A stretch of 64,000 nt of DNA from Selaginella moellendorffii (taxonomy: Eukaryota; Plantae; Lycopodiophyta). Each line of letters starts with the position of its first letter. Position 1 is the first letter of the stretch. The stretch is taken from positions 124,001-188,000 of the forward strand of contig NW_003314383.1 of assembly GCF_000143415.4 (NCBI RefSeq). The letters run 5' to 3'. The position numbers were made by a program, and so were the translations under genes. The notes under the pieces are model-generated. The model was not told where the DNA came from and did no database searches. It saw nothing but the letters and a program-made list of their open reading frames with translations. This document shows positions 7,404 to 59,730 of the stretch, piece after piece.

Positions 7404-8723
7404 TCATTCCCTCGGATGGTAAAACCGTTGCTGAGAAAAATAGACTGCAAAAGCTACACCGGTCACCAGAAAACCAGCGGCGACAGCAACCTTGAGCCAG
7501 TCCGGAATTGTGTCCGGAAGTTCATATCGACTACTATGCTCCTGCCAATACTTGAGCAACTTGATAGATAAACGTACCTTTTCACTGATGCTGTCCAAGC
7601 CGTTCGGAAAGAGTTCATCCTCCGGTCGTGTCAATTCAGCAACCTCCTTCTCGACCTCTGGGGGTGATTGTTCCTGGATCTGGCTAAAGCTCATCTTTCG
7701 TAATGCGTCAGCAACCACAAGCTGGGGGAGACTCGGCCTCGACATGAGCTTCATCTTGTCGGATTCCTGTTGATCGATAGACCCTGTAAAAGTTCCTAAG
7801 CGCCTGTGGCAGCTCTCATACGCCCCCATCACTGTCTCCATCTGTGAACTAAATACTGTTATTTCTGTCTCACTGTCTTTAAACGAAAGCTGGCTCGGCA
7901 GCGATGCGTCCTGGACCTGGTGCTTCATCAGCTCACTAGTCTCGTCGCTCTTCTTTTCCGCCAGAGGGGAGCTGCCAATGGCTTTTTCCTCGTGCCAACA
8001 GTGAGGAACAGTGTCCCAAGAGTCCGAGAAGGACGCATCACTGTCGACGTCTAGCCGAGAGTAAATCTTGCTAGCACGTAAATGGTGCCATCTTTCCAAA
8101 AGGTCCTGTTGCAGGAACCCAGAACAGAGACTGCTGTCCCCAGAAGATCCGTCACAAGTGCCGCTGATATCTGTAGTCGACTCACTGTCTGGATCGTCAG
8201 ATATCCATTCCAGTGAAGCTCGTCCCGGCCTTGGTACTTTCTTCTCCTTGTGCAAAATGGTAGCAACCTTTGGTAAGGCTTCGACTGTCAAGAGCGCTCG
8301 GGGCTTCGACTTGCGGCGGTCTTTCACGTCTCCCTTGACAGTGGGTCCGATTCCAAAACATCCATCCAAGTCGCGAGAGGCTTTCTTCCGGAGAATATCG
8401 GGGGAACAAGACGGCTGTGCTGGAGGAGCGATGTGATTCCCAGCAGTGCCGCTCGACCTGGGAGGAGAAACCTGGACTGGATCTGGCTGCTTCGCTGCTG
8501 CTGCGATCACCCGAGATTGAGCCACGGTAGCCTCGAGCCACTTGAGACACGGCGCCACATCCACGGCAGTGCCCGCATTGTCAGCTCCTGATCTGGGAGA
8601 TTTGTTGCAAGGCTTGCGCTCTCCGAGAGGACGGCGGAGGAGATTCGAGGAGCAGTGCCGAAGCTGGAGATTAGTACCTGGAGGACGCCGATTCTCCTTT
8701 GCGGGCTCGCCGTGCCGACGCAT
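7404..8723 (-). CDS. Uncharacterised low-complexity protein with N-terminal KEN/D-box-like motifs and a C-terminal TM segment
   Basis: Long ORF with first ATG at 8723 (MRRHGEPAKENRRPP), a Ser-rich body and a hydrophobic tail (WLKVAVAAGFLVTGVAFAVYF). The 3' exon structure is uncertain. Confidence 0.6.
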   Translation of the reverse strand: MRRHGEPAKENRRPPGTNLQLRHCSSNLLRRPLGERKPCNKSPRSGADNAGTAVDVAPCLKWLEATVAQSRVIAAAAKQPDPVQVSPPRSSGTAGNHIAPPAQPSCSPDILRKKASRDLDGCFGIGPTVKGDVKDRRKSKPRALLTVEALPKVATILHKEKKVPRPGRASLEWISDDPDSESTTDISGTCDGSSGDSSLCSGFLQQDLLERWHHLRASKIYSRLDVDSDASFSDSWDTVPHCWHEEKAIGSSPLAEKKSDETSELMKHQVQDASLPSQLSFKDSETEITVFSSQMETVMGAYESCHRRLGTFTGSIDQQESDKMKLMSRPSLPQLVVADALRKMSFSQIQEQSPPEVEKEVAELTRPEDELFPNGLDSISEKVRLSIKLLKYWQEHSSRYELPDTIPDWLKVAVAAGFLVTGVAFAVYFSQQRFYHPRE

Positions 8724-8849
8724 CTTCTCCAGCTCCAAAAACCCTAGCGCTTGGTCTGACTCCAAAATCTAGAGCTTGGAGGGAAAAATACAAACCTCAC
8801 GGAAGATGCGTTGCTCACGGAAGATGCTGACGACACCGGAATATTCTCC

Positions 8850-10895
8850 TCAAGAACAAGCTTGCAAGTTGGAGAGGAGAATGTAGGACGACGCCCACTG
8901 CCCGCCCTTTTGGAGCGCTCTCTCCGCCACTCTCTCCGCCGCATCGACGCCGCCATGGCTCTTGCAAGCGCCCAACAACGCCGTCCACGCGATTCCATCC
9001 GGCGCCACTGGCATCCTCTCCACGAATTCCTCGGCGCTCTCGAGAATTCCGGCTCGGCTGAGCAGATCGATCATGCAGGCGTAGTGCTCGGCCGCGGGTG
9101 CGATTCCATAGCTCTCACTCATCGCCGTGAAGTGATGCGTCCCCAGCTCCACGAGCCCCATATGGCTGCAAGCGCTGAGCGCCGCGATGTAGGTCACGGC
9201 CGTCGGGATTGTTCCATCTTGCTCCATCGCATGGAGTAGATCCAGCGCCTCCCTCACAAATCCGGCCTGGGAGTAGCAAGAGATCATCGTGTTCCACAGC
9301 GCGGAGCTCCGCCTGGCGCCCCCGCGATCGAATAGCCGCCTTGCTTCTTGGAGATTTCCACACTTGCCATACATCCCGACCAGCGAATTCGCGACCGTGG
9401 AGCTGGAATCGTAGCCAGCAGCGTCAATCTCAGCGTGGAGGAACCGGCCGCGAGCTAGATCCGATGCAGCGCCACACGAATCGATCGCCACCAAGAAGGC
9501 CATCTCGTCGGGTTTGATTCCATCAAGATCCATGAGCAAGAAATATTTCATCGCCGATCGAGCGTCGCCGCTCTGGAGGAAGCCGGTGACGATCGCGCTC
9601 CAGGAGATCACGTCCCTGGCAGGAATCGCCAAGAACAGCGCCAGCGCCTCGTCCATCACAGCGTTGAGGCACAATCCCGTGAGCATCGCGTTGCAAGCCG
9701 AGGTGTTCTTCGCTGGAAGATCGCGGAAGACGGCCAGGGCGGATTGGATCCGGCCGCCTTGGCAGTAGCCGATGATCAATCCAATCCACGACGAAATGCT
9801 CCACTTCGGCATCCTCGCGAAGGAATCCTCGGCGCCTTCCACGCTCGCGGTGTGACCATAGGCGGAGACGAGTGTGTTCCAAGAGATGAGATTCCTTTGC
9901 GGCATCGCCAGGAAGAGCGCTATGGCGGAGGACATATCGCCGGTGTAAGCGTAGCCAAGCATCGCGGCGGTGGAGGAGACGATGTCGTGCTGCGGCATCT
10001 TGCCAAGAACAGCTCTCGCGAGCTCGGGCTCGGCATTCTTGGCGTGCGCGGTGATCAAAGAATTCCAAGAAACGATGTTTCTTTCTCCCATCCTCTCGAA
10101 GAGATTCTTGGCGCCGAAGTGGTCTCGATTCTGTGCGAATGCCGCGATCATCACATTGCACGCTGATAGATCTGGAGCAGCCAGCTGCTCGAATGCCGCT
10201 CTAGCCCGCGAGAGATTTCCCTCGCTAGCGTGCGCCATGACGAGGATGCTAGAGATTGCGGCACTCTTGAATCCAAATCGATCTTTCATGCTCGTCGCGA
10301 GATCCAAGTGGCCCTGCGTCGCGAGCGCGTGGATTACGAGCGTCCAGGAAGCCTCGCTCCATCCCGGCATCCGATCGAAGACGTTCTTGGCCGCGAATGA
10401 ATGCCCGCTATGGGCAAATGCTGCGATCATCGCGTTCCAGGAGATCTCATCCAGCTCCGGCATCCAGTGGAAGATCACGGACGATTGTTCTGGCGATCCA
10501 ATGCGCGAGTAGGCCGTGAGAATCGAATTGAACGACACGAGTCCCCACTGTGGCATTCGATCGAAGACTTCCCTGGCAAGAACAATATCCCCATTCCTGA
10601 CATATGCCCCCAAGAGGATGTTCCAGGAGAATGTGTTGGATCTCTGGATCTGCGAGAAGGCCAGATGCGCCTCATCCATGGATCCACAGCTGGAATACAT
10701 CTGAATGAGGAGATTTCCAAGGAGAGTGTCGTGATCCTGGCGAGAGGCGACGATGTGAGCGTGAAGACGCTTGCCCTCCCGCAGGGATTTGCAAGCGATG
10801 CACTGGCGGAGGAGATTGGCGTAGGCCGCGCGCTCGATGTGGAAGGCGTCGCCGAATCGATCGACATTGTAGACAAACTCGGCCAAGCTTCTCAT
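8850..10895 (-). CDS. PLS-class pentatricopeptide repeat protein with E domain, no DYW
   Basis: Repeated FDRMP...D/N..SWN..I.A motifs and the E motif ALSACSHMGLV...EHYACMIDLLSRAG...WTALLGAC. Probable start is MRSLAEF at 10895; the ORF extension to 11084 is antisense to the Clot gene. Confidence 0.92.
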   Translation of the reverse strand: MRSLAEFVYNVDRFGDAFHIERAAYANLLRQCIACKSLREGKRLHAHIVASRQDHDTLLGNLLIQMYSSCGSMDEAHLAFSQIQRSNTFSWNILLGAYVRNGDIVLAREVFDRMPQWGLVSFNSILTAYSRIGSPEQSSVIFHWMPELDEISWNAMIAAFAHSGHSFAAKNVFDRMPGWSEASWTLVIHALATQGHLDLATSMKDRFGFKSAAISSILVMAHASEGNLSRARAAFEQLAAPDLSACNVMIAAFAQNRDHFGAKNLFERMGERNIVSWNSLITAHAKNAEPELARAVLGKMPQHDIVSSTAAMLGYAYTGDMSSAIALFLAMPQRNLISWNTLVSAYGHTASVEGAEDSFARMPKWSISSWIGLIIGYCQGGRIQSALAVFRDLPAKNTSACNAMLTGLCLNAVMDEALALFLAIPARDVISWSAIVTGFLQSGDARSAMKYFLLMDLDGIKPDEMAFLVAIDSCGAASDLARGRFLHAEIDAAGYDSSSTVANSLVGMYGKCGNLQEARRLFDRGGARRSSALWNTMISCYSQAGFVREALDLLHAMEQDGTIPTAVTYIAALSACSHMGLVELGTHHFTAMSESYGIAPAAEHYACMIDLLSRAGILESAEEFVERMPVAPDGIAWTALLGACKSHGGVDAAERVAERALQKGGQWASSYILLSNLQACS

Positions 10896-30247: not shown

Positions 30248-31398
30248 TATGGCCGTGCTGCTAAGCTTGGAACAAACTGGCGCGAATGGTGGCCGGACAG
30301 CCTTTGGACCAGTCGAGGTTAGCATAGAGTGCGAGTTCCTGTTCCGAAAGGCCCAACTCCCATTGTTTGTGGATCAGATGGAAAGCAAGTGGAGGTCAGG
30401 TGCAGCTGGAGAGCACTATCACGTCGCCTGCGAGATGTGCCACCCACTCGTCACACTCATAGTCGTCTTCAATCACTATATCCCGCACCCGACCCTTGAA
30501 CAAGGGGAGCCAACGTTTTTGCTCGCCGTCCTTCTCCAGCACACTGAGTGCAACGTGACGGTCGCCATGGATCGTCCCTTGCCTGTGGACCACCAGGATC
30601 CTCCGGCCGCGGTACAAAAATCCCCGGATGGGCCAATTCATGCAAGTCGTCTAGCTCACAAATGCTGGAGTCGTCAAAATCCATTGGATTCTCTTCTGAG
30701 AGCTCAGTCGTCCATTTCAGCGCGTCCAGGTTGTAGAAACCGTCGTCATCTTCGTCTCCAATGTTGTAACCAGGATTGCATTTCCCCCTAGCAGGGATGA
30801 TGTAGTCTCCTGCCACCCAGCGTCCAGTGCCAGAGTTGTACTGGAGAATGCCGCCAACATCAATGCGGCCAACATCTTCTGAATTGATACGCTTGTTGTT
30901 GAGCACTGCAATGTGATATATTCCCGTCTCAGGATCCAAATCCATCGCCTCGATCGCCTGGACCTTCTCGGTACACCGGAGAACCTTCCAAGTGTTCGTA
31001 AGAGGATTGCCTACTGTGAGAGACCGTGAGCAAGGACTGTTGGGACGGTGTATTACAGCAAGCGTGCCACACACTAGACCATTGGACGAGCAATGCCCTA
31101 CAAAGACGGAGCTCTTTCCAGGCGGGTCAATGGGCAGAGAAATGCGCTTGAGCTTGAGAGCCTCGCCAGAGAAAGGGCGCCATAGGGCTGTGGATTTGGA
31201 TCCGCGGCGCACAATCGTCCGGACCACCCATGGGATGGGATGCTTCAATCCGAAATCTCGAGCAAAAGATCCAGAGTGGAAAATGTGGTACCAAGATCGG
31301 CACACCCTACACATTAGGGCCACTCTTTCGATGTCCAACCTCGCAAGGATTTCCATCAGCAAATCCTCCCCCAGCCGATTGAAGATGGAGTCCTCCAT
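30248..31398 (-). pseudogene. F-box gene with intact N-terminus, a frameshift near 30650 and a premature stop at 30396
   Basis: MEDSIFNRLGEDLLMEILARLDIERVALMCRVCRSW F-box. The C-terminal part homologous to 36250-36660 lies in another frame (ORF 30396-30641). Confidence 0.75.
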
Positions 31399-36249: not shown

Positions 36250-37240
36250 TTATGGCCGTGCTGCTAAGCTTGGAACAAACGTGTAGCTGGCGCGAATGGT
36301 GGCCGGACAGCCTTTGGACCAGTCGAGGTTAGCATAGAGTGCGAGTTCCTGTTCCGAAAAGCCCAATTCCCTTTGCTCGTCGATCAGATGAAACGCAAGT
36401 GTAGGCCAAGTGCAGTTGGAGAGCACTGTCACGTCGCCTGCGAGATGTGCCACCCAGTGATCACACTCAAAGCCTTCAATCGCCGGCCATCCTTCCCCGA
36501 CTATATCCCGCACACGACGCTTGAACAAGGGGAGCCAACGTTTTTGCTCGTCGTCCTTCTCCAGCACACTGAGTGCAATGTGAAGGTCGTCATGGATCGT
36601 TCCCACCAGGATCCTCCGGCCGCGGTACAAAAATCCCCAGATAGGCCAATTCATGCAAGTCTCGTCGTCGATCTCACGAATGCTGGGATTCTCTTCTGTG
36701 AACTCAGTCCATTTGAGTGTATCCAGGTTGTAGAAACCATCGTCACCGTTACCTCGGTTGTAGCCAGGGTTGCACTGTATCAGATCACTTGTTATGACGT
36801 CCCGTCCAGTGCCAGAGTTGTACTGGAGACTTTCGCCAACGTATTTTGAATCGATACGCTTGTTGTTGAGCACTGCAATTCGATAGATTCCCGTCTCAGG
36901 ATCCAAATCCATTGTCTCGGTCATCTCGACCCACTCGGTACACCGGAGCACCTTCCAAGTGTTCGTAAGAGGATTGCCCACACTGAGAGACCGTGAGCAA
37001 GGACTGGTGGGACGGTGTATTACAGCAAGCGTGCCACACACTAGACCATTGGACGAGCAATGCCCTACAAAGACGGAGCTCTTTCCAGGCGGGCCAATGG
37101 GCAGAGAAATGTGCTTGAGCTTGAGAGCCTCGCCGGAGAAAGGGCGCCACAGCTGTGGATTTGGATCCACGGCACACAATCAGTGTCTAGCCGCGTAAGG
37201 ATTTCCATCAGCAAGTCCTCCCCGAGCCGATCGAAGATAT
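36250..37240 (-). pseudogene. F-box paralog with intact C-terminal domain but deleted and frameshifted F-box and no ATG
   Basis: Highly similar to 30248-31398. The 5' end IFDRLGEDLLMEILTRLD is out of frame with the long ORF after an internal deletion. Confidence 0.8.
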
Positions 37241-38254
37241 CTTAGCCCTAGGCCCTAAAAATGCAATGTTAAACCCTAAAGCGCGGGAAAATTTCTTTGT
37301 TTTAATAAACCATGATGTTTAATAATAATTTGCTATGCATTGCATGTAATAACGCTTGGTTTGCTTAATAGTAGTGTTATTCCGATTTATTAATTCAATT
37401 AATCAAATAAAGTTTATAATTTATATGCATGTTTGTAATTTATAAACACAAAATTAATCTTATTGTATATAATAGAATAAAAAAGAATATATTAGAAAGG
37501 GTTTATGAAAGTTTATAAATTATAAACATGTTTATAATTATAAATACAAAATTAATCTAAATGAATAACAACTGTTAAATGGTAGAATATCCTAAAATAT
37601 TCAAGCATATTTTAGGTATATTCACTATCATCCTAGTTTTGCTTAAAAACTACTTGTAAGCTATTTATTGAAATTAAGTTACTATCCTTTCTATGAATTG
37701 ACATGAAGAAATTGCTGCAAAACTCAAAAAGCCAAGCAAGAAAGGAAGATGCAACAGAGTAGAGTCATCTTCATGTTGAGTATAGCCAAGAGAAGACTAA
37801 AGGATGGAACAACTGGAGCATCATGAGACATCATGCCAAGGGACACGTGAGAGTTGAAGATACTTTTATTCTGCCTAAATTTTTCAAAATCTTGCTCATA
37901 CTGATCATCAGGCTGTTGTGTAATCTCCCCAAACACGACCTCTCAGACCTTGCAAGCTTAGCAATCATCTCATTTTCCTATCGTTGAAGAAAACTAAGCA
38001 AACGAAATTCCATAAGAAAGACGCTCCAATACAAAGAAAAGAGCAGCTTGAGTCCAAAGCCAAGCTCATGATGCTGAAAGGAATGGCAAATCAACCTTTC
38101 ACATAAATTGTTTTGCTTTTTAATTGTTGATTTGTTTCCACTTTTCTTGCCTACAACTTCGGATAGCAAACAAACGACCGAAGAATCATCATCTTCCAAA
38201 CCCAGACATACCGTCATAGCTTTATTGAGAAGATTAACTACAAGAAAGTGTGCT

Positions 38255-38635
38255 TTAGCAGCCAGTGACATAATCCGCCTTGAACTTGCAGCCGTCATTG
38301 TAAGTCTTGATACCACACTTGGCGCAGTTGCGAGCACGGAGTTCGTTGAAGGCAGTGATCATCTCGTTGCCAGTGAGGTCGCAGTTGGAGCCGGAGACAA
38401 AGAGCCCACAGTGGCCGGAGCAGACGCCTGTGGAGCCTTTGTTGCCGCCAGTGAAGTAGCGGTTGCTAGGCTGAATCTGGCGGCGAGCAGCATCACAGTC
38501 GCTCTGTGCGAGGCCACTGCACCGTGTAGAGCCAGCACACGAGTAGGAGTCCTGAGCATGAGAGCCCCGCAACAACACGAGATTCACAACAAGCAAAACA
38601 TATGTGAGAGCTAGTGCCATGTTCATCGACTTCAT
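38255..38635 (-). CDS. Small secreted cysteine-rich protein, KP4 killer toxin-like
   Basis: Signal peptide ending GSHA, then a ~99-aa mature chain with 10 Cys. The pattern C-x-GS-x2-C ... G-x-E ... L-x4-C-x2-CG ... YV-x2-C* parallels KP4. TATA-like ccatataaata lies ~25 nt upstream. Confidence 0.8.
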   Translation of the reverse strand: MKSMNMALALTYVLLVVNLVLLRGSHAQDSYSCAGSTRCSGLAQSDCDAARRQIQPSNRYFTGGNKGSTGVCSGHCGLFVSGSNCDLTGNEMITAFNELRARNCAKCGIKTYNDGCKFKADYVTGC

Positions 38636-38742
38636 GGTTGCTTAGATATCGAACCCCTTATTTATATGGGAAGGCACAGAAGCGTGTCTAACTTTGCTCC
38701 CAGCCTGACTTCCAACACAAACTTAAGCGGTCAAGAAGGAAG

Positions 38743-39050
38743 AACCCAAACTTAGGTGGTCAAGGAGAACTGCTGTATTGACACAATATTAAGCCCCCCA
38801 TTTTGATCGTGATCCTACCCAGAGAAACGTGTCTAGCTTTGCTCCACTGGTCACCTGTCCAGACAGTGACTGTCACGACTTAATTGTCGCAATACCAACC
38901 CAAACTTAGGTGGTCAAGGAGAACTGCTGTATTGACACAATATTAAGCCCCCCATTTGATCGTGATCCTACCCAGAGAAACGTGTCTAGCTTTGCTCCAC
39001 TGGTCACCTGTCCAGACAGTGACTGTCACGACTTAATTGTCGCAATACCA
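38743..39050. repeat. Near-perfect 154-bp direct tandem duplication upstream of the KP4-like gene
   Basis: aacccaaacttaggtggtcaaggag...ttaattgtcgcaatacca occurs at 38743 and 38897. Confidence 0.95.
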
Positions 39051-40299
39051 ACATGATCCCCCATTAATATTATATATCCATGTGTGAGGTCCACATCTAT
39101 TATTAACATAACTATAATAGTAAAATAAATTAAATTGGGTGCCACATGGCATGATCTGGCTCATCCAGAAAACATGTGGCAGCTTTGGTAATATAGCTAC
39201 CACCACTGTTCTTTTATGCATGTGTACTAGTGACCCAAGTTACAAGTTGTGTCCAACATCAACCATAGTGCATATCAAGTGTTTGTGTGGGCAATATTCT
39301 CTTCACACCATCAAGTTGTACAATAACGTTTTGCTCCCGGTTCATAAGGATTTGCCTTGCAGTTACGATCTCGAGCCCATTATTTATATGGTGTGGGCGG
39401 GCACAGAAGCGGGTCTATAGCTTTGCTCCCAGCAAGACTTCCAAAACTTAGGCGGTCAAGGAGGAACCCATTTATAATTGCATGGCCCTGCCCAGAGAAG
39501 CGTGTCTAACCTTGCTTTACAGGTCACAACTTGTTTAGACGGCGACTTGTTCGCATAGATGGACACGTAGAAGAAAGATCCCGCCATGTATATAGAAGGC
39601 TTCAGCTGTATTTTATTAAAAGTCCATTTTTCTTTGTTAAACTTTGCTCTTTGGTTGTTAACATATATCAGCTTGATCGACATGGCCCAATTGACCGAGT
39701 GTGAAACCTGAGCCATTGCGTCCATCAGGCCGATGGCCCAATCTCATTTTGATCATAATATTTGGTTGGAGCAGAGCACAGGTTCGGCATGTTCTAGCTG
39801 GCTGTCGACCCAGATGTCACTCAATGATTGTCACTCTTTTCCTTTCTCATGTCTTAGTTGTTGACTTATTAAGGCGGTGAGATGAATTTTTAAAAGTACA
39901 TTTATGTAAAACTGTTTTGTTTAAGATGCTTCTAATATATTTTATCTAACGGTTGATATATATTTAGATAAACTTGTATTTTTGACTTATAAACAAGTTT
40001 ATAATTTATACCCAAATTATTCTTGTACTGTTGTGTCTATTGATCAATTGGAAGTTTCTTGGCACGATCATGGAATCCGTGCCGGGGATTATGAAGAACA
40101 AGATCAAAAGAATGAATGAAGAGCTCCTGAGCTTTTTTTTGCTCCATCTCCAACAATGTGGAAAATCTCCCAGGCCAAGAGCTCTAGATCGACTCATGTT
40201 GCGCAGGTCTTGAACGATGGCAGCAAAAGGCTGCTCCACAGCTCTGGAGTGGTCTCTCGTCAGCCAAAATTCCAGGCAAGATCAGAAACCACTTCAAGC

Positions 40300-40945
40300 A
40301 CAATGATCCCGATGGCTACGTTGATCTCGCCGGTCTCGAGCGCGTCGCTCCTCCGCGCCATCGTCTACTGCCAATCCGGCCTCACAAACGGCTTCACCAG
40401 GAGCTTCACCAAGGGCTTTGCAGGGCGGCAGCAAAGCAACAGCCGCCCTCTCCACCGCCTCCAGGGATTCCAGCACTAACTGCATCAATCCAAAGTCGAC
40501 CATCAACCACGACTTCCTGGTGATTGTGCTGATCGTCGGGGGCGTGGAGCAATTCTTCCTTTTCGAGAAGTGTGGCCCTGGCGGTGACTGCGGGATCAAC
40601 ATCACCCCCGTTCTCAGCCTGGGCGATTTTACCAATGCCAAGCTGCTGAATTTCGATTGCGAGGATACGCCGCTGGAACTGCGCGAGCTCATGAGGATCA
40701 CGACCCGCAGTATAGCCTTCACGACAAGAACTGCTGGGAGTATGCGATGAGCACCGCTAAGAAGCTGCTGATGGAGTGCCACCGGAGGAGTGGAAAGGCC
40801 CAGTTTCGAGAGCGGGCCCAGGTGGTCGGGGGTGAGATCACTATAGAACACGCCCGAGGTATCAGCAGTCGATATTTCATGGTGCTTGCGCGAGTGGCAA
40901 CGATTGCCATGTACGCTGGCTCCCCAATAATACTTCCTAGTTGAC
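40300..40945 (+). pseudogene. Frameshifted gene of a probable permuted papain-like (PPPDE/LRAT-like) family
   Basis: Fragments across frames: HDFLVIVLIVGGVEQFFLFEK ... DHDPQYSLHDKNCWEYA (His before a Y-x-L-x3-NC motif). A homologous decayed copy lies at 54440-54650. Confidence 0.5.
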
Positions 40946-41017
40946 GACCACGTTTGCAATCGTTGACTAGCCTCAAGTTGGCACGTGATTTATCGTCTAC
41001 TTTCCATTTTTCTAGTT

Positions 41018-43561
41018 TCAAAAGAAGAAGTCACTGTGGAATCCATAAGGTACTCGCTGGGGGAGACCAATTCTTGCTACAGCTTGATCCTGAAACTTTT
41101 GTGCATCAAATATGTACACCTGCAAGTACAAATTTTACACTTGCCAACTCTCTTACAGTATGCACTCACTTCGGATTTGTTTGTCTCCTCGTCATGCACA
41201 TAGCTCACAATCCACCCGTCGTCTTCATCTGTTGAGTGGGGTCTCGCCACAAACAAAGGCTCCGATCCGTATCGGTTGGCTCCCAGATCGTGGTACTTCA
41301 CATCAATTTCATCCTACAGAGATATAACAATTAGCTGATTGATAACTCGCAATGGCGTACTTCACAAGATTCCGGAAGTTTTACTTTCATGAACTTGCCA
41401 TACTTTGGCATGCCTGTAAACAGCAAATCTTAAGTACATGAGCAAAAAAACGCATTGAAACTTACCTACAACTTTGCTAGCCTCCACATCCACCACCTGG
41501 GCATAGGCAAATTGGTTCTTCCTTCCTGTAAATTTCTTGTTGATTTTTGGCATTTCGATTCCACAAGTTTCCAACGATGTCAAGTTCCTTTCCACCACCG
41601 TCCCTGCTCAGCAAACTCATAAACCAAAACTCAGTTCACTCTATAGAAACAAACGAAACCTTTGTCAAGATTGAATCTCCATTCCCGCAAATTGGCCAAG
41701 AGGGCACCATCAACTTGAGGGTCTCTGGCATTTCTTGGATCAGTCGGTGTTATGCCCCGAGCAAACCACTCGCGTCTGTCCACACCATTTGGCGTGGGAA
41801 AGAATGGAATCTTCGAAAACAAAGCATGCAACACAATCTGTTTATCACATGATAATATTTAGTTAGCAAAACAATTTTTTGAAATTTCTTTTTAGCTGAA
41901 GTTTACTTACTTCATCACTGTCTTCAAAGGCATTTACAGCGTGGAAGCTGTATCCAGGCTCTACTTCGAACCACCTTACTGACTTAGAATCGCCATAACG
42001 AGGCATAACTCCTATTCTGGAAGAAGAGTTGTTCTCAAACTCGACCAGCCTGAGACATGGGCTCAGATTAAAAGCCTTAAAACACAACATGACAACTACC
42101 TTCCTGATCCTTTCAGCAATCGGTTCATGTTGATCGTGAGTGGAAAATCAGGAATCAAGGTGTAACTGGAAAAGAACTCACACGAGAATCCAGAACTCGA
42201 TTCATGAATGAAATGCTACTTACTTTTTCGTTATTGAAATCTCGTGAATAAAGCATGCACGATCAAGCTCCAGATCTGTCTTTTGTATCAAGTCTCCATC
42301 CTCTGGATGAAAAGAGTGAGCAGAAGTTTGTGTTTTGATACAGTCACTTACTGGAAACGATTCCAATTTGCAAGTATGGCGACTTTGCATTGAAACCAAA
42401 GATAACGAGCTCTTGCTTTTCCAGATCAAACTTAAAGTAGAAGAACACAATTCAATAATAGGGTCACTTTGTGATCAACCATACCTTGGAGTGAGATGTG
42501 AACGGTCCTTTCCATTTACCACTAAAATCAAGAGTGCCAAGAGTGTTGAGGCTTGATAAATCTATTTCATGAGGAATATCTGCTTCTGCGACTGCATACA
42601 ACTTCCCAGCAAGCTTGAAAACGTGCGTATTGCATGTTGGCCCATTAACTTTCCCAAAACGTAGCTGCACATTGTAGCTAAGGAAAATAAAACAAAATAA
42701 ATGCAATTGCCTTACGAAGTTTAGAAGATAACTTGCTGAGATAGCCAAAGAATCTCCCTCCACAGCTCTTAGGAATGAGGTTTTCTTCGTGTTCTTTTCG
42801 ATTTTGTGTGCCATAGTATCAACATATTTGTTCTTATATGTGATGAACTTGCCACCTTGATCAAACCTGGTCGCATGAAGCATTCCATCACCTTCAAACC
42901 AGTGACAATACAGTTTCCCAAAAGGACTTATGAGAATACTTTCATCAAGGAGGTAAGGGTTTGGACCTGATTTAAAGGTAGAAAAAAGAAAATTAATAGA
43001 ACCAATGAATTCAGAACACACAATCATGAGCAAAACCACTGCCAAAACACCATTTCTTTAAACGCACCGTTTCTTATGTAAGTTCCTGCTGGGAAATCCT
43101 GAGGTATTTCTCCATCAATAACTTGAACTGGTGTCCAAGATCCCACCTCTTCCACGGGTGAAAAGTTTTCCTAGAAGGAATTTATTCAGAAAATATCTGC
43201 GAAAGTTTTCAGTATCTTACCTGGTAATAAATATTCCGTTCCTTATCTGGTTTGTATAGAGCATCCACAAGCACATCAAGAAACTTGTTTCTACTAGTGT
43301 GGAACAAGCTTTTGAGAAAAGGGGGAACCTTGATCAAAAGCGAAGATTTACGAACTGCTAAGAGTCATACATCACACCTTTCGTGTAGCAAGTGCTCCAT
43401 TTCCAGTAACTGGCACAGGTCCATATGACGATGATGCTGCAGCTATGTTGAGCTACAATTCCATGATTGAGTATGCAATTCATACCTTGACATGCCTTTG
43501 TTGCTACAGGGGAGAGATTTGGAGTAGCCTGATGAAAAGTTCCAGCCACAATGCTGGCCAT
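41018..43561 (-). CDS. Carotenoid cleavage dioxygenase-like protein (RPE65 family), multi-exon
   Basis: NFSPVEE...GEIPQDFPAGTYIRNG|PNP; HWFEGDGMLHA; FTSHSK; CFIHEISIT; IGVMPRYGDSKSVRWFEV...FHAVNAFE; EDDGWIVSYVHDE; RVPYGFHS. Confidence 0.9.
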
Positions 43562-43697
43562 TGCTATGCGACTCGCCCAAACCGAATCTTTCGTATTTAA
43601 ATGGTCTCCCGGTTTGTCTTTCTTGCCACATTTGATCCTTCCTCTCATGTGCTTGTGGACTTTCTCTAATAACTATTTCTTTGCCGCTTATGTGAAT

Positions 43698-43700
<3 letters not shown>

Positions 43701-43740
<40 letters not shown>
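43701..43740. repeat. (GA)n microsatellite
   Basis: Seen directly. Confidence 0.9.
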
Positions 43741-43994
43741 ATCCGATGTGTTATACTTTTACTTGTTAGATTTTAATGTGGGGATTGGGTTTATGTGCTA
43801 TTAAATGTGAAATTTTCAAAATTGTTCTGTAGGAAAATAACTAATATCAATATTAGTTTGTTACTTGCATTAATGACTCACATTTGCTCTTTTTGCCTTG
43901 CATCTCCTCCCTTAGATCTCTTATATCCAAACCAGGGGCTGAGCTTTATGTTAGCTACTCGTGCAAATTGGAGATACATAGTAACTTAGTAACC

Positions 43995-44378
43995 ATGAAG
44001 TCGATGAACATGGCGCTAGCTCTCAATGTCTTACTTGTGAATGTCATGATCATCATGTTGTTGCGGGGCTGTCATGCTCAGGACTCCTACTCGTGCGCTG
44101 GCTCTACACTGTGCAGGGACCTCGCACAGAGCGACTGTGATGCTGCTTGCCGCCAGATTCAGCCTAGCAACCGCTACTTCATCGGCAGCAACAAAGGCTC
44201 CAGCAGCGTCTACTCCGGCCACTGTGGCCTCTTTGTCTCTGGCTCCAACTGCGACCTCAATGGCTCCGAGATGATCACTGCCTTTGACGAACTCCGTGCT
44301 CGCAACTGTGCCAAGTGTGGTATCAAGACTTACAATGACGGCTGCCAGTTCAAGGCGGATTATGTCACTGGTTGCTAA
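43995..44378 (+). CDS. Second KP4 killer toxin-like secreted protein (inverted paralog of 38255-38635)
   Basis: MKSMNMALAL...HAQDSYSCAGSTLC...NCAKCGIKTYNDGCQFKADYVTGC*. The 3' flanks are also homologous in inverted orientation. Confidence 0.8.
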   Translation: MKSMNMALALNVLLVNVMIIMLLRGCHAQDSYSCAGSTLCRDLAQSDCDAACRQIQPSNRYFIGSNKGSSSVYSGHCGLFVSGSNCDLNGSEMITAFDELRARNCAKCGIKTYNDGCQFKADYVTGC

Positions 44379-45069: not shown

Positions 45070-45870
45070 AGATAACTTGATGAAGCAGGCGTACCAGGAA
45101 TTGTTCATGAGCATCTTCCTGCGACTCGATGTGGATGCGAGTGGTGGCGCCGCTCCTGGTACTGCATTCTTTTGTATGTTCTCTGGGACCGTTCGAGCCC
45201 ACTTCTCTGCCTCTCGCCCGCCTGTCTACAATGTTTGCGAGCCATTTCACGGCAAATGGATGGGTGGCCGGAATGGAGAAGTGCTCGCTCACGGTCTCTG
45301 GCTGTGGGCAATCCGCTCACAAACAGTTTGGAAGATGCTCTGTTGAGGAAGTTGATAGCATTGAGACGATATGTGGATCCTGAGACAGGGATTTATCGGA
45401 TTGCCGTGCTCAACACCAAGACAGTGATGGTAGGGAGTGTTTCGGGAGTTTGTTGTCTACCTTCTCCGGTACAATTCTGGCTCCGGAAGCTGGGGGAATC
45501 CACGACTTGTCCAATCCTGGCTACAGTGAGGGAGAGGATCGCTTCTATGATCTGAACACCATGCAATGGAGTCGGCAAGTGGTGAGCCAGGATCCATTCG
45601 CCTACTGGGAAGTATTGTGTGAGGATTTTACTGGTACAAGCGTGCTGGCTAGAGACGGATGAGGATGGCTCACACTCAGCCATGGTCGCATCCGGGAAAT
45701 ACGAGTGGCCACCTCGTGATATCAACATGGGAGGTGAAGAATGGATGGCTCATCTTGTGGATGATGTGATCGTTGTCTCCAGCTGTATGGGTAATTTTGT
45801 GTTCTAATCTGGTGGAGAAGAAATGGGAGTATTGTGGTCATTCGGAAGAAGAGTCTGCATCCAACCTCAA
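45070..45870 (+). pseudogene. Decayed F-box gene of the same family as 30248-31398
   Basis: ELFMSIFLRLDV; SRSLAVGNPLTNS; DPETGIYRIAVLN; NPGYSEGEDRFYDL; WMAHLVDDVIVVSSC, spread across shifted frames. Confidence 0.8.
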
Positions 45871-59146: not shown

Positions 59147-59339
59147 AGAAAGTTTGATTAGAAAGAAGACAAGGTTGCATTCTTCAATTTAGAATGTTAA
59201 ATTGATTAAGTACTTTTGAGGTGGAGATTCGGAATATTTTTGAAAAATTTTATTTTTGAATATTTTTGAATATTTTTGAGGAGGCTCCTTTAGCAATAAG
59301 GTAATGAAAAGAAATAAACAAAAGAGGGCATAAGCTAGC

Positions 59340-59730
59340 ATGGCGATCGGCTCTGCCTTTCGGCTTTGTGAGGAGGAGATGCTCGTGGGCATCCTCCTGC
59401 GACTCGGTTTCCACAGCGTCGCTCGGACCGTCCTGGTACCGCGGACGAATGCGGGCTCACGGTATTTGGCCGTGGGGAATCCTCTCACAAACACTTGGAA
59501 GATGATCCAGTGCCCTGAAGAGGATAGAGGCGATGGATGTGGACCCCGACACAGGGATCTACCGGATTGCAGTGCTTAACAACAAGACAGTGAATCACCG
59601 ACACTAGCTTCATTCTCCAATACAATTCTGGCTCGGGAAATTGGGTTTCCATAGACAGCGGGATAATGCGATGCAATCCTGGCTACAACCAAAAAGCAAA
59701 AAGATGGCTTCTACGATCTTGACATGACAT
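59340..59730 (+). pseudogene. F-box remnant
   Basis: FRLCEEEMLVGILLRL; SRYLAVGNPLTNTWK; DPDTGIYRIAVLNNK; CNPGYN. Confidence 0.75.

Follow-up and report, generated by a model that had tools for sequence, protein, structure and literature searches.

An expressed MU117-family gene with a predicted KP4 fold and its inverted duplicate in Selaginella moellendorffii

The stretch of Selaginella moellendorffii DNA analyzed here (64 kb, referred to as the window) carries two small intronless genes in opposite orientation. Copy 1 lies on the minus strand at positions 38255..38635 and encodes 126 aa plus the stop codon, as delimited by its ORF and by RNA coverage, while copy 2 lies on the plus strand at 43995..44378 and encodes 127 aa plus the stop codon, its length being measured from an ATG within a longer ORF that begins with TTG. 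The two proteins are 82% identical. A repeat search identified the pair as an inverted duplication with a left arm at 38255..38648 and a partner arm at 43982-44378, which are 91% complementary and comprise the CDS and 13 nt upstream only. Searching the 64-kb window by tblastn yielded no further family copy, and S. moellendorffii holds three diverged paralogous loci of this family. Located between the two copies is a carotenoid-cleavage-dioxygenase (CCD)-type gene (40033..43500, minus strand), which belongs to the genomic context rather than to the family and was delimited by spliced contigs, reads and Pfam RPE65 matches on four of its exonic ORFs. It contains about 14 short GT-AG introns, which the reads show as 47-101-nt CT..AC joints, and since this spliced gene sits between both copies, the locus can be considered ordinary plant nuclear DNA. 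The scaffold carrying both copies and the spliced plant gene (GL377687.1 of assembly GCA_000143415.2) spans 459 kb, and subtracting 124000 from its record positions gives those of the window.

An earlier note made from the letters of this DNA had described two paralogs with a signal peptide and a mature chain containing ten Cys, and both ORFs were recovered with these features. The N-terminus is hydrophobic in both copies (mean Kyte-Doolittle value of 2.6 over residues 8-22) and, judged from sequence features, comprises the n-, h- and c-regions and the small -3/-1 site of a signal peptide, with S-H-A in copy 1 and C-H-A in copy 2 as the small-residue site ahead of QDSYSC. The Pfam domain begins at residue 31, and the mature chain consists of 99 aa with exactly 10 Cys in both copies, the positions of which differ between them. 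In copy 1, a signal peptide of about 27 aa is followed by a basic 10-Cys domain (99 aa, pI 8.4) of the MU117/KP4-fold type with Cys at the positions of the family pattern (6, 12, 20, 45, 49, 58, 77, 80, 89 and 99). The ORF of copy 2 is likewise intact, its mature chain has a pI of 5.6, Cys45 is replaced by Tyr and a new Cys is found at mature position 24.

Transcripts of copy 1 were present in the RNA sets of several studies, and RNA contigs as well as raw reads spanned its CDS without a joint, so that the intronless structure described earlier holds for this copy. A TATAAATA box (38659..38666, minus strand), assigned from the sequence as the TATA box of copy 1, is located 31 nt ahead of the ATG, and the same TATAAATA box is found upstream of the paralog SELMODRAFT_431177. 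The RNA 5' ends cluster at 38625-38636 (read ends at 38625, 38630 and 38636), and upstream of 38655 a read depth of 491 gives way to 1.2. This position of the 5' ends implies a very short leader, and either Met4 or Met6 may be the true start of the protein. At the other end, transcript contigs from three studies reach 156-157 nt past the stop codon and define a 3' UTR of about 156 nt (38099..38254, minus strand). Expression of copy 1 was about 70x that of the neighbour gene, and this ratio differed about 100-fold between samples. Copy 1 is a real, functional and very highly expressed nuclear gene, ranking among the strongly expressed genes of Selaginella.

Both proteins matched Pfam MU117 (PF15474), which takes its name from the meiotically up-regulated gene 117 of S. 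pombe, with 66.2 bits for copy 1 and 64.6 bits (E 1.7e-17) for copy 2 at a gathering cut-off of 30.4 bits, and both covered the profile end to end (positions 1-105 of 105). Membership in Pfam Kp4 (PF09044), the family that the earlier note had named for a profile search, had to be dropped, as neither of the two proteins matched this profile with E<=1. Weak matches to Pfam Kp4 were observed for 10 of 27 relatives (best 8.8e-6), and these show that MU117 and Kp4 are related families. Among the 27 plant and fungal members, eight Cys are invariant and two are nearly invariant; copy 1 has all ten, and copy 2 is devoid of the nearly invariant Cys45 and carries the extra Cys24. Judged by these profile matches, the window proteins are members of Pfam MU117, which is found mainly in fungi and is the sister of Pfam Kp4 inside the KP4 structural superfamily.

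The predicted structure is an alpha/beta sandwich that superposes as a single domain on 1KPT, and the best structure match in the Atlas was an MU117 member with a TM of 0.73. The structural models therefore support the proposal that the window proteins are folded like the KP4 killer toxin of Ustilago. At the sequence level this relation is remote: single-sequence phmmer against the PDB sequences returned no match, and a PDB match to KP4 emerged only with the family profile, in an alignment that includes the motifs named in the earlier note and in which 7 of the 10 Cys stand opposite a Cys of KP4. Lys42 of KP4 is said, after Gage et al. 2002, to be needed for channel block; in the HMM alignment, which is of low confidence in this loop, a Gly (…T-G-V-C) stands opposite this residue.

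Liverworts, mosses, a fern and five or more genera of angiosperms have close homologs with 60-90% identity, which removes the appearance of a lycophyte oddity that the pair had at first. Homologs were located on plant chromosomes of 18-304 Mb, and Marchantia polymorpha has one or few orthologs (MPTK1_3g24560). The mature chain is about 90% identical between liverwort, lycophyte and angiosperm. Across the plant clade (liverworts, mosses, Selaginella, a fern and a few angiosperms, about 450 My) omega was 0.05-0.1, the tree was near star-like and the plant branches were very short, a pattern that shows very strong purifying selection. In the tree of 59 sequences, the root of which is not fixed, the plants form one side of a branch with moderate support (80/84) that includes sequences without taxon. 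Together with Onygenales, this branch belongs to a clade supported at 99/93 that is itself placed within further layers of Basidio- and Ascomycota, and the gene tree of fungal MU117 is incongruent with the species tree. The proteins without taxon, originating from Logan, JGI and ENA, are P0004, P0005, P0008-10, P0022, P0026-28, P0030, P0032 and P0036, of which P0028 and P0032 are classed as fungal-type solely by their pro-region. Word-seeded protein searches returned plants, fungi and metagenome or transcriptome proteins, with no algal or other non-fungal homologs among the matches. The fungal affinity proposed earlier was thereby borne out: the plant clade, placed by its sequences within fungal MU117, fits an old fungus-to-plant transfer. 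The simplest history would be a single such event, of presumed direction and age, followed by mainly vertical descent. The pro-region and the intron of the fungal genes are lost in the plant members. Host integration and expression are evident from the position of the genes on either side of a spliced plant gene and from the high RNA depth.

Several other accounts of this locus have to be weighed. That the copies stem from contaminating fungal DNA or faulty assembly, or are members of a known cysteine-rich family of plants such as DUF26/ginkbilobin, is extremely improbable. The spliced and expressed RPE65/CCD neighbour with its typical short Selaginella introns, the identity of the 459-kb scaffold and the transcripts from several studies led us to reject contamination, while DUF26 and other plant CRP families were rejected on the lack of a match to Pfam Stress-antifung (PF01657) and a structural score for KP4 twice that for DUF26; the fold and family results that would have spoken against the KP4 proposal did not materialize. 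We also regard it as very unlikely that the family originated in plants or early eukaryotes and was acquired from plants by Onygenales and the sources of P0028 and P0032, or that the Selaginella copies arrived recently from another plant. The closest fungal sequences do form a small, taxonomically odd group, there are signs that copies in angiosperms spread horizontally, and Selaginella is separated from Artemisia or Ranunculus by a dS of about 0.65, a low value for over 400 My that makes later plant-to-plant movement possible. Against these accounts, the plants are several nodes deep within diverse Asco- and Basidiomycota MU117, no algal or other non-fungal homologs came up in the word-seeded searches, dS reaches saturation (about 1.5) for Selaginella against Riccia, and S. 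moellendorffii maintains its three diverged loci. For the pair itself, the earlier view of fungus-derived genes retained and duplicated in a lycophyte stands as far as the duplication is concerned, but not in its assumption that both genes work, as only copy 1 looks functional by RNA, TATA box and dN/dS. A function of copy 2 in an unsampled tissue, stage or stress, with the Cys shift as a neofunctionalised disulfide pattern, seems unlikely to us, even though its intact ORF and count of 10 Cys are retained and a dS of just 0.08 to the nearest paralog left little time for changes to build up. In four RNA data sets, taken from as many studies, read depth was zero over 43855-44254, whereas copy 1 was covered hundreds-fold, and neither a TATA box nor promoter homology was found upstream of copy 2. 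Its dN/dS of 0.67-1.3 against the nearest paralog (NG86 and LWL85) shows relaxed selection, and its mature chain has accumulated eight derived changes, several of them, including that of Cys45, at positions conserved in at least 90% of the family. Given the missing TATA box, the lack of detectable RNA, the relaxed constraint and the loss of a conserved Cys, copy 2 is most likely a young, non-functional inverted duplicate that retained the CDS only. The inverted pair provides a clean case of a duplicate that took its CDS without the promoter and is now decaying.

Regarding function, we consider it probable that the overall explanation is correct, namely that copy 1 is an expressed KP4-fold MU117 gene of old fungal origin with a putative apoplastic, Ca2+-related role, accompanied by a decaying copy 2. 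At about 10.5 kDa, the secreted product of copy 1 has 10 Cys and the KP4 alpha/beta-sandwich fold, and its signal peptide would direct it to the apoplast. There, the disulfide-locked basic domain may bind a conserved membrane target and alter Ca2+ influx, as UmV KP4 and moss PpKP4 reportedly do. Its most likely putative role is that of a constitutive antifungal barrier protein, and the main alternative would be that it acts on tip-growing cells of the plant itself. With identity and origin unchanged, an endogenous function, in which the apoplastic protein would regulate Ca2+ gradients of the plant itself and tip growth in rhizoids, root hairs and protonema, as reported for moss PpKP4, is a possibility of some substance, if clearly the less probable one. 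It draws on the low omega and the short-branched, star-like tree, which suggest a conserved partner that does not co-evolve, on the large differences in relative copy 1 expression among samples, and on PpKP4 knock-outs, in which protonemal cells and Ca2+ are affected (Guan et al. 2023, as cited in PMC12382754 and PMC11228847). PpKP4, however, is a member of Pfam Kp4 and not of MU117, and the loss of the MU117 gene from most seed plants speaks against its being essential for development in those plants. Conservation this extreme is not usual in a defence or antimicrobial protein engaged in an arms race, and an endogenous target fits it at least as well; for a small secreted Cys-rich protein, the 80-90% identity kept between liverworts and some angiosperms suggests a fixed molecular target. 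A bolder version, which we hold to be rather improbable, is that plant MU117 goes back to a fungal toxin which the first land plants co-opted as a conserved apoplastic ligand of a Ca2+-permeable channel, either of plants or universally conserved in fungi, and that it persists in angiosperms only by moving horizontally among distantly related lineages, including parasitic plants, as an entire unit from promoter to polyA. The plant MU117 family offers a tractable entry into the roles of the KP4 fold outside fungi.

Comparison with known systems places these proteins closest to secreted fungal MU117 proteins (Podospora, Xylaria, Mycena, Onygenales and others), with which they share the 10-Cys pattern and a full-length profile match, identity to the closest fungal-type members being up to 58-66%. 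Differences are apparent in the intron and the pro-region (about 30-40 aa) of fungal members, both of which are missing from the plant members, in the location of the latter in plant chromosomes, and in end branches of 0.03-0.1 in plants versus 0.1-1 in fungi, indicating far slower change in plants. KP4 of the Ustilago maydis virus (PDB 1KPT, PF09044) is only 19% identical, with 3 of 10 Cys placed differently and Lys42 at the position of the Selaginella Gly, and is derived from a dsRNA virus, while the Selaginella proteins are plant-nuclear. Zt-KP4-1 of Zymoseptoria tritici (PDB 8ACX, Hce2/ECP2 group), a fungal effector of Group 2, shares 8-12% identity. The DUF26/ginkbilobin-2/PDLP ectodomains (PF01657) have neither a sequence nor a Pfam match to the Selaginella proteins, differ in Cys motif (C-x8-C-x2-C versus C-x2-C-x8-C in Selaginella) and score far below KP4 in structure. 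Moss PpKP4-1/2 of Physcomitrium are likewise secreted land-plant proteins of the KP4 superfamily and are ascribed to fungus-to-plant transfer (Brown 2011, Yue 2012, Guan 2023). Their domain is that of Pfam Kp4, and they group with Fusarium KP4L in structural Group 1, with MU117 forming Group 3 (PMC12382754), while the plant MU117 clade extends from bryophytes to angiosperms and shows much stronger conservation. We found no description of this clade in the literature searched on plant KP4 and PF15474/MU117, and the three transfers of Guan et al. 2023 may include moss genes of the MU117 type. KP4-type killer proteins of mosses, already known and a textbook case of fungus-to-plant transfer, are thus joined by a second branch of the fold, MU117, which the present locus shows in a vascular plant.

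Two putatively secreted proteins of the KP4 fold are encoded in inverted orientation, copy 1 on the minus strand (38255-38635; ORF of 126 aa) and copy 2 on the plus strand (43995-44378; 127 aa counted from an ATG within a longer TTG-ORF). They share 82% protein identity, and the inverted repeat they form (91% nucleotide identity) is confined to the CDS and a 13-nt leader; no third copy was detected within the 64-kb window. The window corresponds to bases 124001-188000 of scaffold GL377687.1 (S. moellendorffii assembly GCA_000143415.2), from which a 4.4-kb stretch retrieved through protein identity reads exactly as the reverse complement of window 36255-40635. In agreement with the signal peptide and ten-Cys mature chain of the earlier note, both ORFs possess a hydrophobic, signal-type N-terminus, which ends in a small-residue cleavage-type site immediately ahead of QDSYSC, and a mature chain of 99 aa with ten Cys. 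In copy 2 this count includes a new Cys at mature position 24, while the family-conserved Cys at position 45 is replaced by Tyr. The mature domain of copy 1 is compact and basic (pI 8.4).

Both proteins matched the whole profile of Pfam MU117 (PF15474; 66 bits for copy 1, 65 bits for copy 2, cut-off 30.4), and the HMM search for Pfam Kp4 matched neither of them even at E<=1. Searching the PDB directly with the window sequences gave no match; when a profile built from 27 mature domains was used, 1KPT was the top PDB sequence match, end to end (E 0.0097), in an alignment that pairs the motifs originally named for these proteins. Pfam Kp4 was matched by 10 of these 27 relatives. The proposed KP4-like identity thus holds at the superfamily level, with MU117 taking the place of Pfam Kp4 as the family, and neither an unrelated fold nor an established plant CRP family emerged when these were looked for.

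Word-seeded searches of a 5.8-billion-protein collection returned 67 proteins, some of them already tagged PF15474 or "Killer toxin Kp4 domain-containing" in databases; no algal homologs were among those with a named taxon. Named plant members came from a lycophyte (the third S. moellendorffii paralog SELMODRAFT_431177, 85% identity), bryophytes (two species each of Riccia, Marchantia and Sphagnum, two copies in Ceratodon), a fern (Adiantum, two copies) and angiosperms (Artemisia annua, Apium graveolens with two copies, Ranunculus cassubicifolius, Orobanche gracilis with two copies, O. hederae and Cuscuta campestris). Relative to the mature chain of copy 1, identity is 80-91% for members from liverworts, the fern and angiosperms and 69-74% for those from mosses. 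Fungal members include the Onygenales Microsporum, Uncinocarpus and Helicocarpus (50-60% identity) as well as Mycena, Favolaschia, Auricularia, Podospora, Cercophora, Xylaria, Coniosporium and Pseudogymnoascus.

A maximum likelihood tree was built from 59 domains. Every named plant sequence falls to one side of a single branch (support 80/84) within a 99/93 clade shared with Onygenales and fungal-type unknowns, which is itself enclosed by successive layers of Basidiomycota and Ascomycota. This topology supports the fungal derivation claimed earlier and, probably, one main transfer into plants, since the plant sequences stay nested for any root position among the fungal sequences. End branches measure 0.03-0.1 in plants versus 0.1-1 in fungi. 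Among the fungi the topology departs from the species tree and so points to no particular donor. The fungal-type sequences nearest to the plant clade are two Logan proteins, P0028 and P0032 (gene of the latter at L002:636-1094, Logan SRR23143851 contig), which carry the fungal pro-region (L-x-N-G...K-R) and have 65-66% identity with the mature chain of the plant proteins.

Codon comparisons of the mature domain (98 codons, large errors) between copy 1 and Riccia (dN 0.07, dS 1.5, omega 0.05), Orobanche (dN 0.05, dS 1.1, omega 0.05) and Artemisia (dN 0.05, dS 0.66, omega 0.08) showed strong purifying selection on the plant clade. The liverwort dS is saturated and matches the expectation for an old split under such selection, while the Selaginella-angiosperm dS is below our expectation for more than 400 My. 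This shortfall may reflect deflation by a moderately high GC3 (0.56-0.81), or it may point to later gene movement among vascular plants. Among the angiosperms, the copies of Artemisia annua (L003:5895-6662, 8414-8918), Apium graveolens (L010:9917-10542) and Ranunculus cassubicifolius (L006:5931-6624) are about 86% identical in their flanks, extending beyond the CDS for ~85 nt 5', including a common TTTGGCTATAAATAAGGGA TATA box, and for 70-160 nt 3'. The two campanulids, Apium and Artemisia, are no closer to each other than either is to Ranunculus (Ranunculales), and dS is 0.23 between Artemisia and Ranunculus versus 1.0-1.3 to Orobanche and Cuscuta, relationships that conflict with the species tree. 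Plant-to-plant transfer of a promoter-to-polyA unit could account for this pattern, and the presence of the gene in two Orobanche species and Cuscuta speaks for it; an unusually slow clock could also explain the closeness.

Apium AgCh_040245 (P0012; L010:10001-11974) is a 190-aa model in which the last residues are swapped for a spurious spliced extension, and the underlying DNA holds an intact 126-aa-type ORF with the family C-terminus. The tandem second copy of Artemisia (L003:8527-8915) occupied two frames in tblastn, is apparently frame-shifted and has an assembly gap immediately past its stop, and a truncated copy (P0029) lies on another contig.

A carotenoid-cleavage-dioxygenase-type gene (40033-43500, minus strand; Pfam RPE65 in four exonic ORFs) is located between the two copies. 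RNA-derived contigs and raw RNA reads revealed that ~14 introns, each 47-101 nt long and bounded by GT..AG, are spliced out, and a fungal contaminant was ruled out because this spliced gene lies between the copies. The intron at 41116-41167 was retained in one run's contig and 5' introns differed in another, differences that may point to alternatively spliced or intron-retaining transcripts.

Copy 1 is intronless, as proposed, because RNA covers it without any joint. Its expression is very high and variable: depth reached ~490 in raw stranded reads, with RNA from the minus strand, and 2555, 133 and 534 for the transcript contigs from three further studies, compared to about 7, 28, 147 and 15 for the neighbouring gene in the same order, contig-derived depth being a rough expression measure only. 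The 5' ends of reads cluster at 38625-38636, and a TATAAATA box identified in the sequence (38659-38666) precedes them by ~30 nt, so the leader is extremely short, and the start codon in use may be Met4 or Met6. About 10-15% of the reads of one raw RNA set (X21) over copy 1 (38265-38625) hold a set of eight variants that matches both copy 2 and SELMODRAFT_431177 incompletely, which suggests an additional expressed paralog or a divergent allele in the sampled plant.

S. moellendorffii contains at least three paralogous loci, and SELMODRAFT_431177 (scaffold GL377712.1) has flanking homology with both window loci. Values of dS and dN/dS were 0.08 and 0.67-1.3 for copy 2 and SELMODRAFT_431177, 0.13-0.15 and about 0.5 for copy 1 and copy 2, and 0.17-0.19 and 0.27-0.31 for copy 1 and SELMODRAFT_431177. 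With the latter as reference, eight derived substitutions, the Cys-to-Tyr change among them, are private to copy 2 within the mature chain, and several of them hit columns whose conservation in the family is 90% or more. The TATAAATA box lies 30-50 nt ahead of the ATG in both copy 1 and SELMODRAFT_431177. Upstream of copy 2 no TATA box is present, paralog homology begins just 13-24 nt before the ATG, and RNA depth was zero across 43855-44254 in all four data sets. These observations mark copy 2 as a drifting duplicate that has lost its promoter while its frame is still open; alternatively, it may be expressed only under particular conditions, four RNA sets having been sampled. All three paralogs are followed, at a distance of ~0.9-1.4 kb, by a short dispersed repeat (36859-37005, 45280-45420, 30897-30954, 59333-59581; L001:9011-9336 at the SELMODRAFT_431177 locus) that also occurs at two other window sites; it is either a leftover of the segment that was duplicated or else a small mobile element.

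Copy 1 combines secretion signals with a ten-Cys, basic KP4-fold domain; the protein would be exported to the apoplast and could there act on a membrane target governing Ca2+ entry. As PMC12382754 summarises, UmV KP4 inhibits L-type channels and the uptake of Ca2+ by fungi and disturbs Ca2+ gradients of plant root hairs; in moss, PpKP4 affects protonemal Ca2+. We rank a putative constitutive antifungal role first, narrowly ahead of a putative role in tip-growing cells of the plant itself: conservation of the family is extreme and argues for the latter, but most seed plants lost the gene, which favours the antifungal role.

No literature description of an MU117-type clade in vascular plants was found by a search whose reach did not extend to Guan 2023, which reportedly covers moss KP4-type genes and their fungal origin. 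Moss KP4-type genes of fungal origin have been published (Yue 2012; PMC3493653). For this locus, the present analysis adds how the copies contrast in expression, how copy 2 is decaying and codon-level estimates of selection, as well as the fungal nesting and the unusual pattern among angiosperm copies.

In fungal MU117 proteins a pro-region of 30-40 aa separates the signal peptide from the domain, and the Microsporum gene contains intron sequence, whereas none of the plant genes examined has an intron, and in each the domain begins straight after the signal peptide. Compared to UmV KP4, seven of the ten Cys coincide in the profile alignment and three do not, and Gly stands opposite KP4 Lys42, a residue we take to be functionally important. 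In a structural survey of the KP4 superfamily, PF15474, the family of the window proteins, constitutes Group 3, distinct from Group 1, in which UmV KP4 is placed together with Fusarium KP4L and the moss PpKP4 proteins (PMC12382754).
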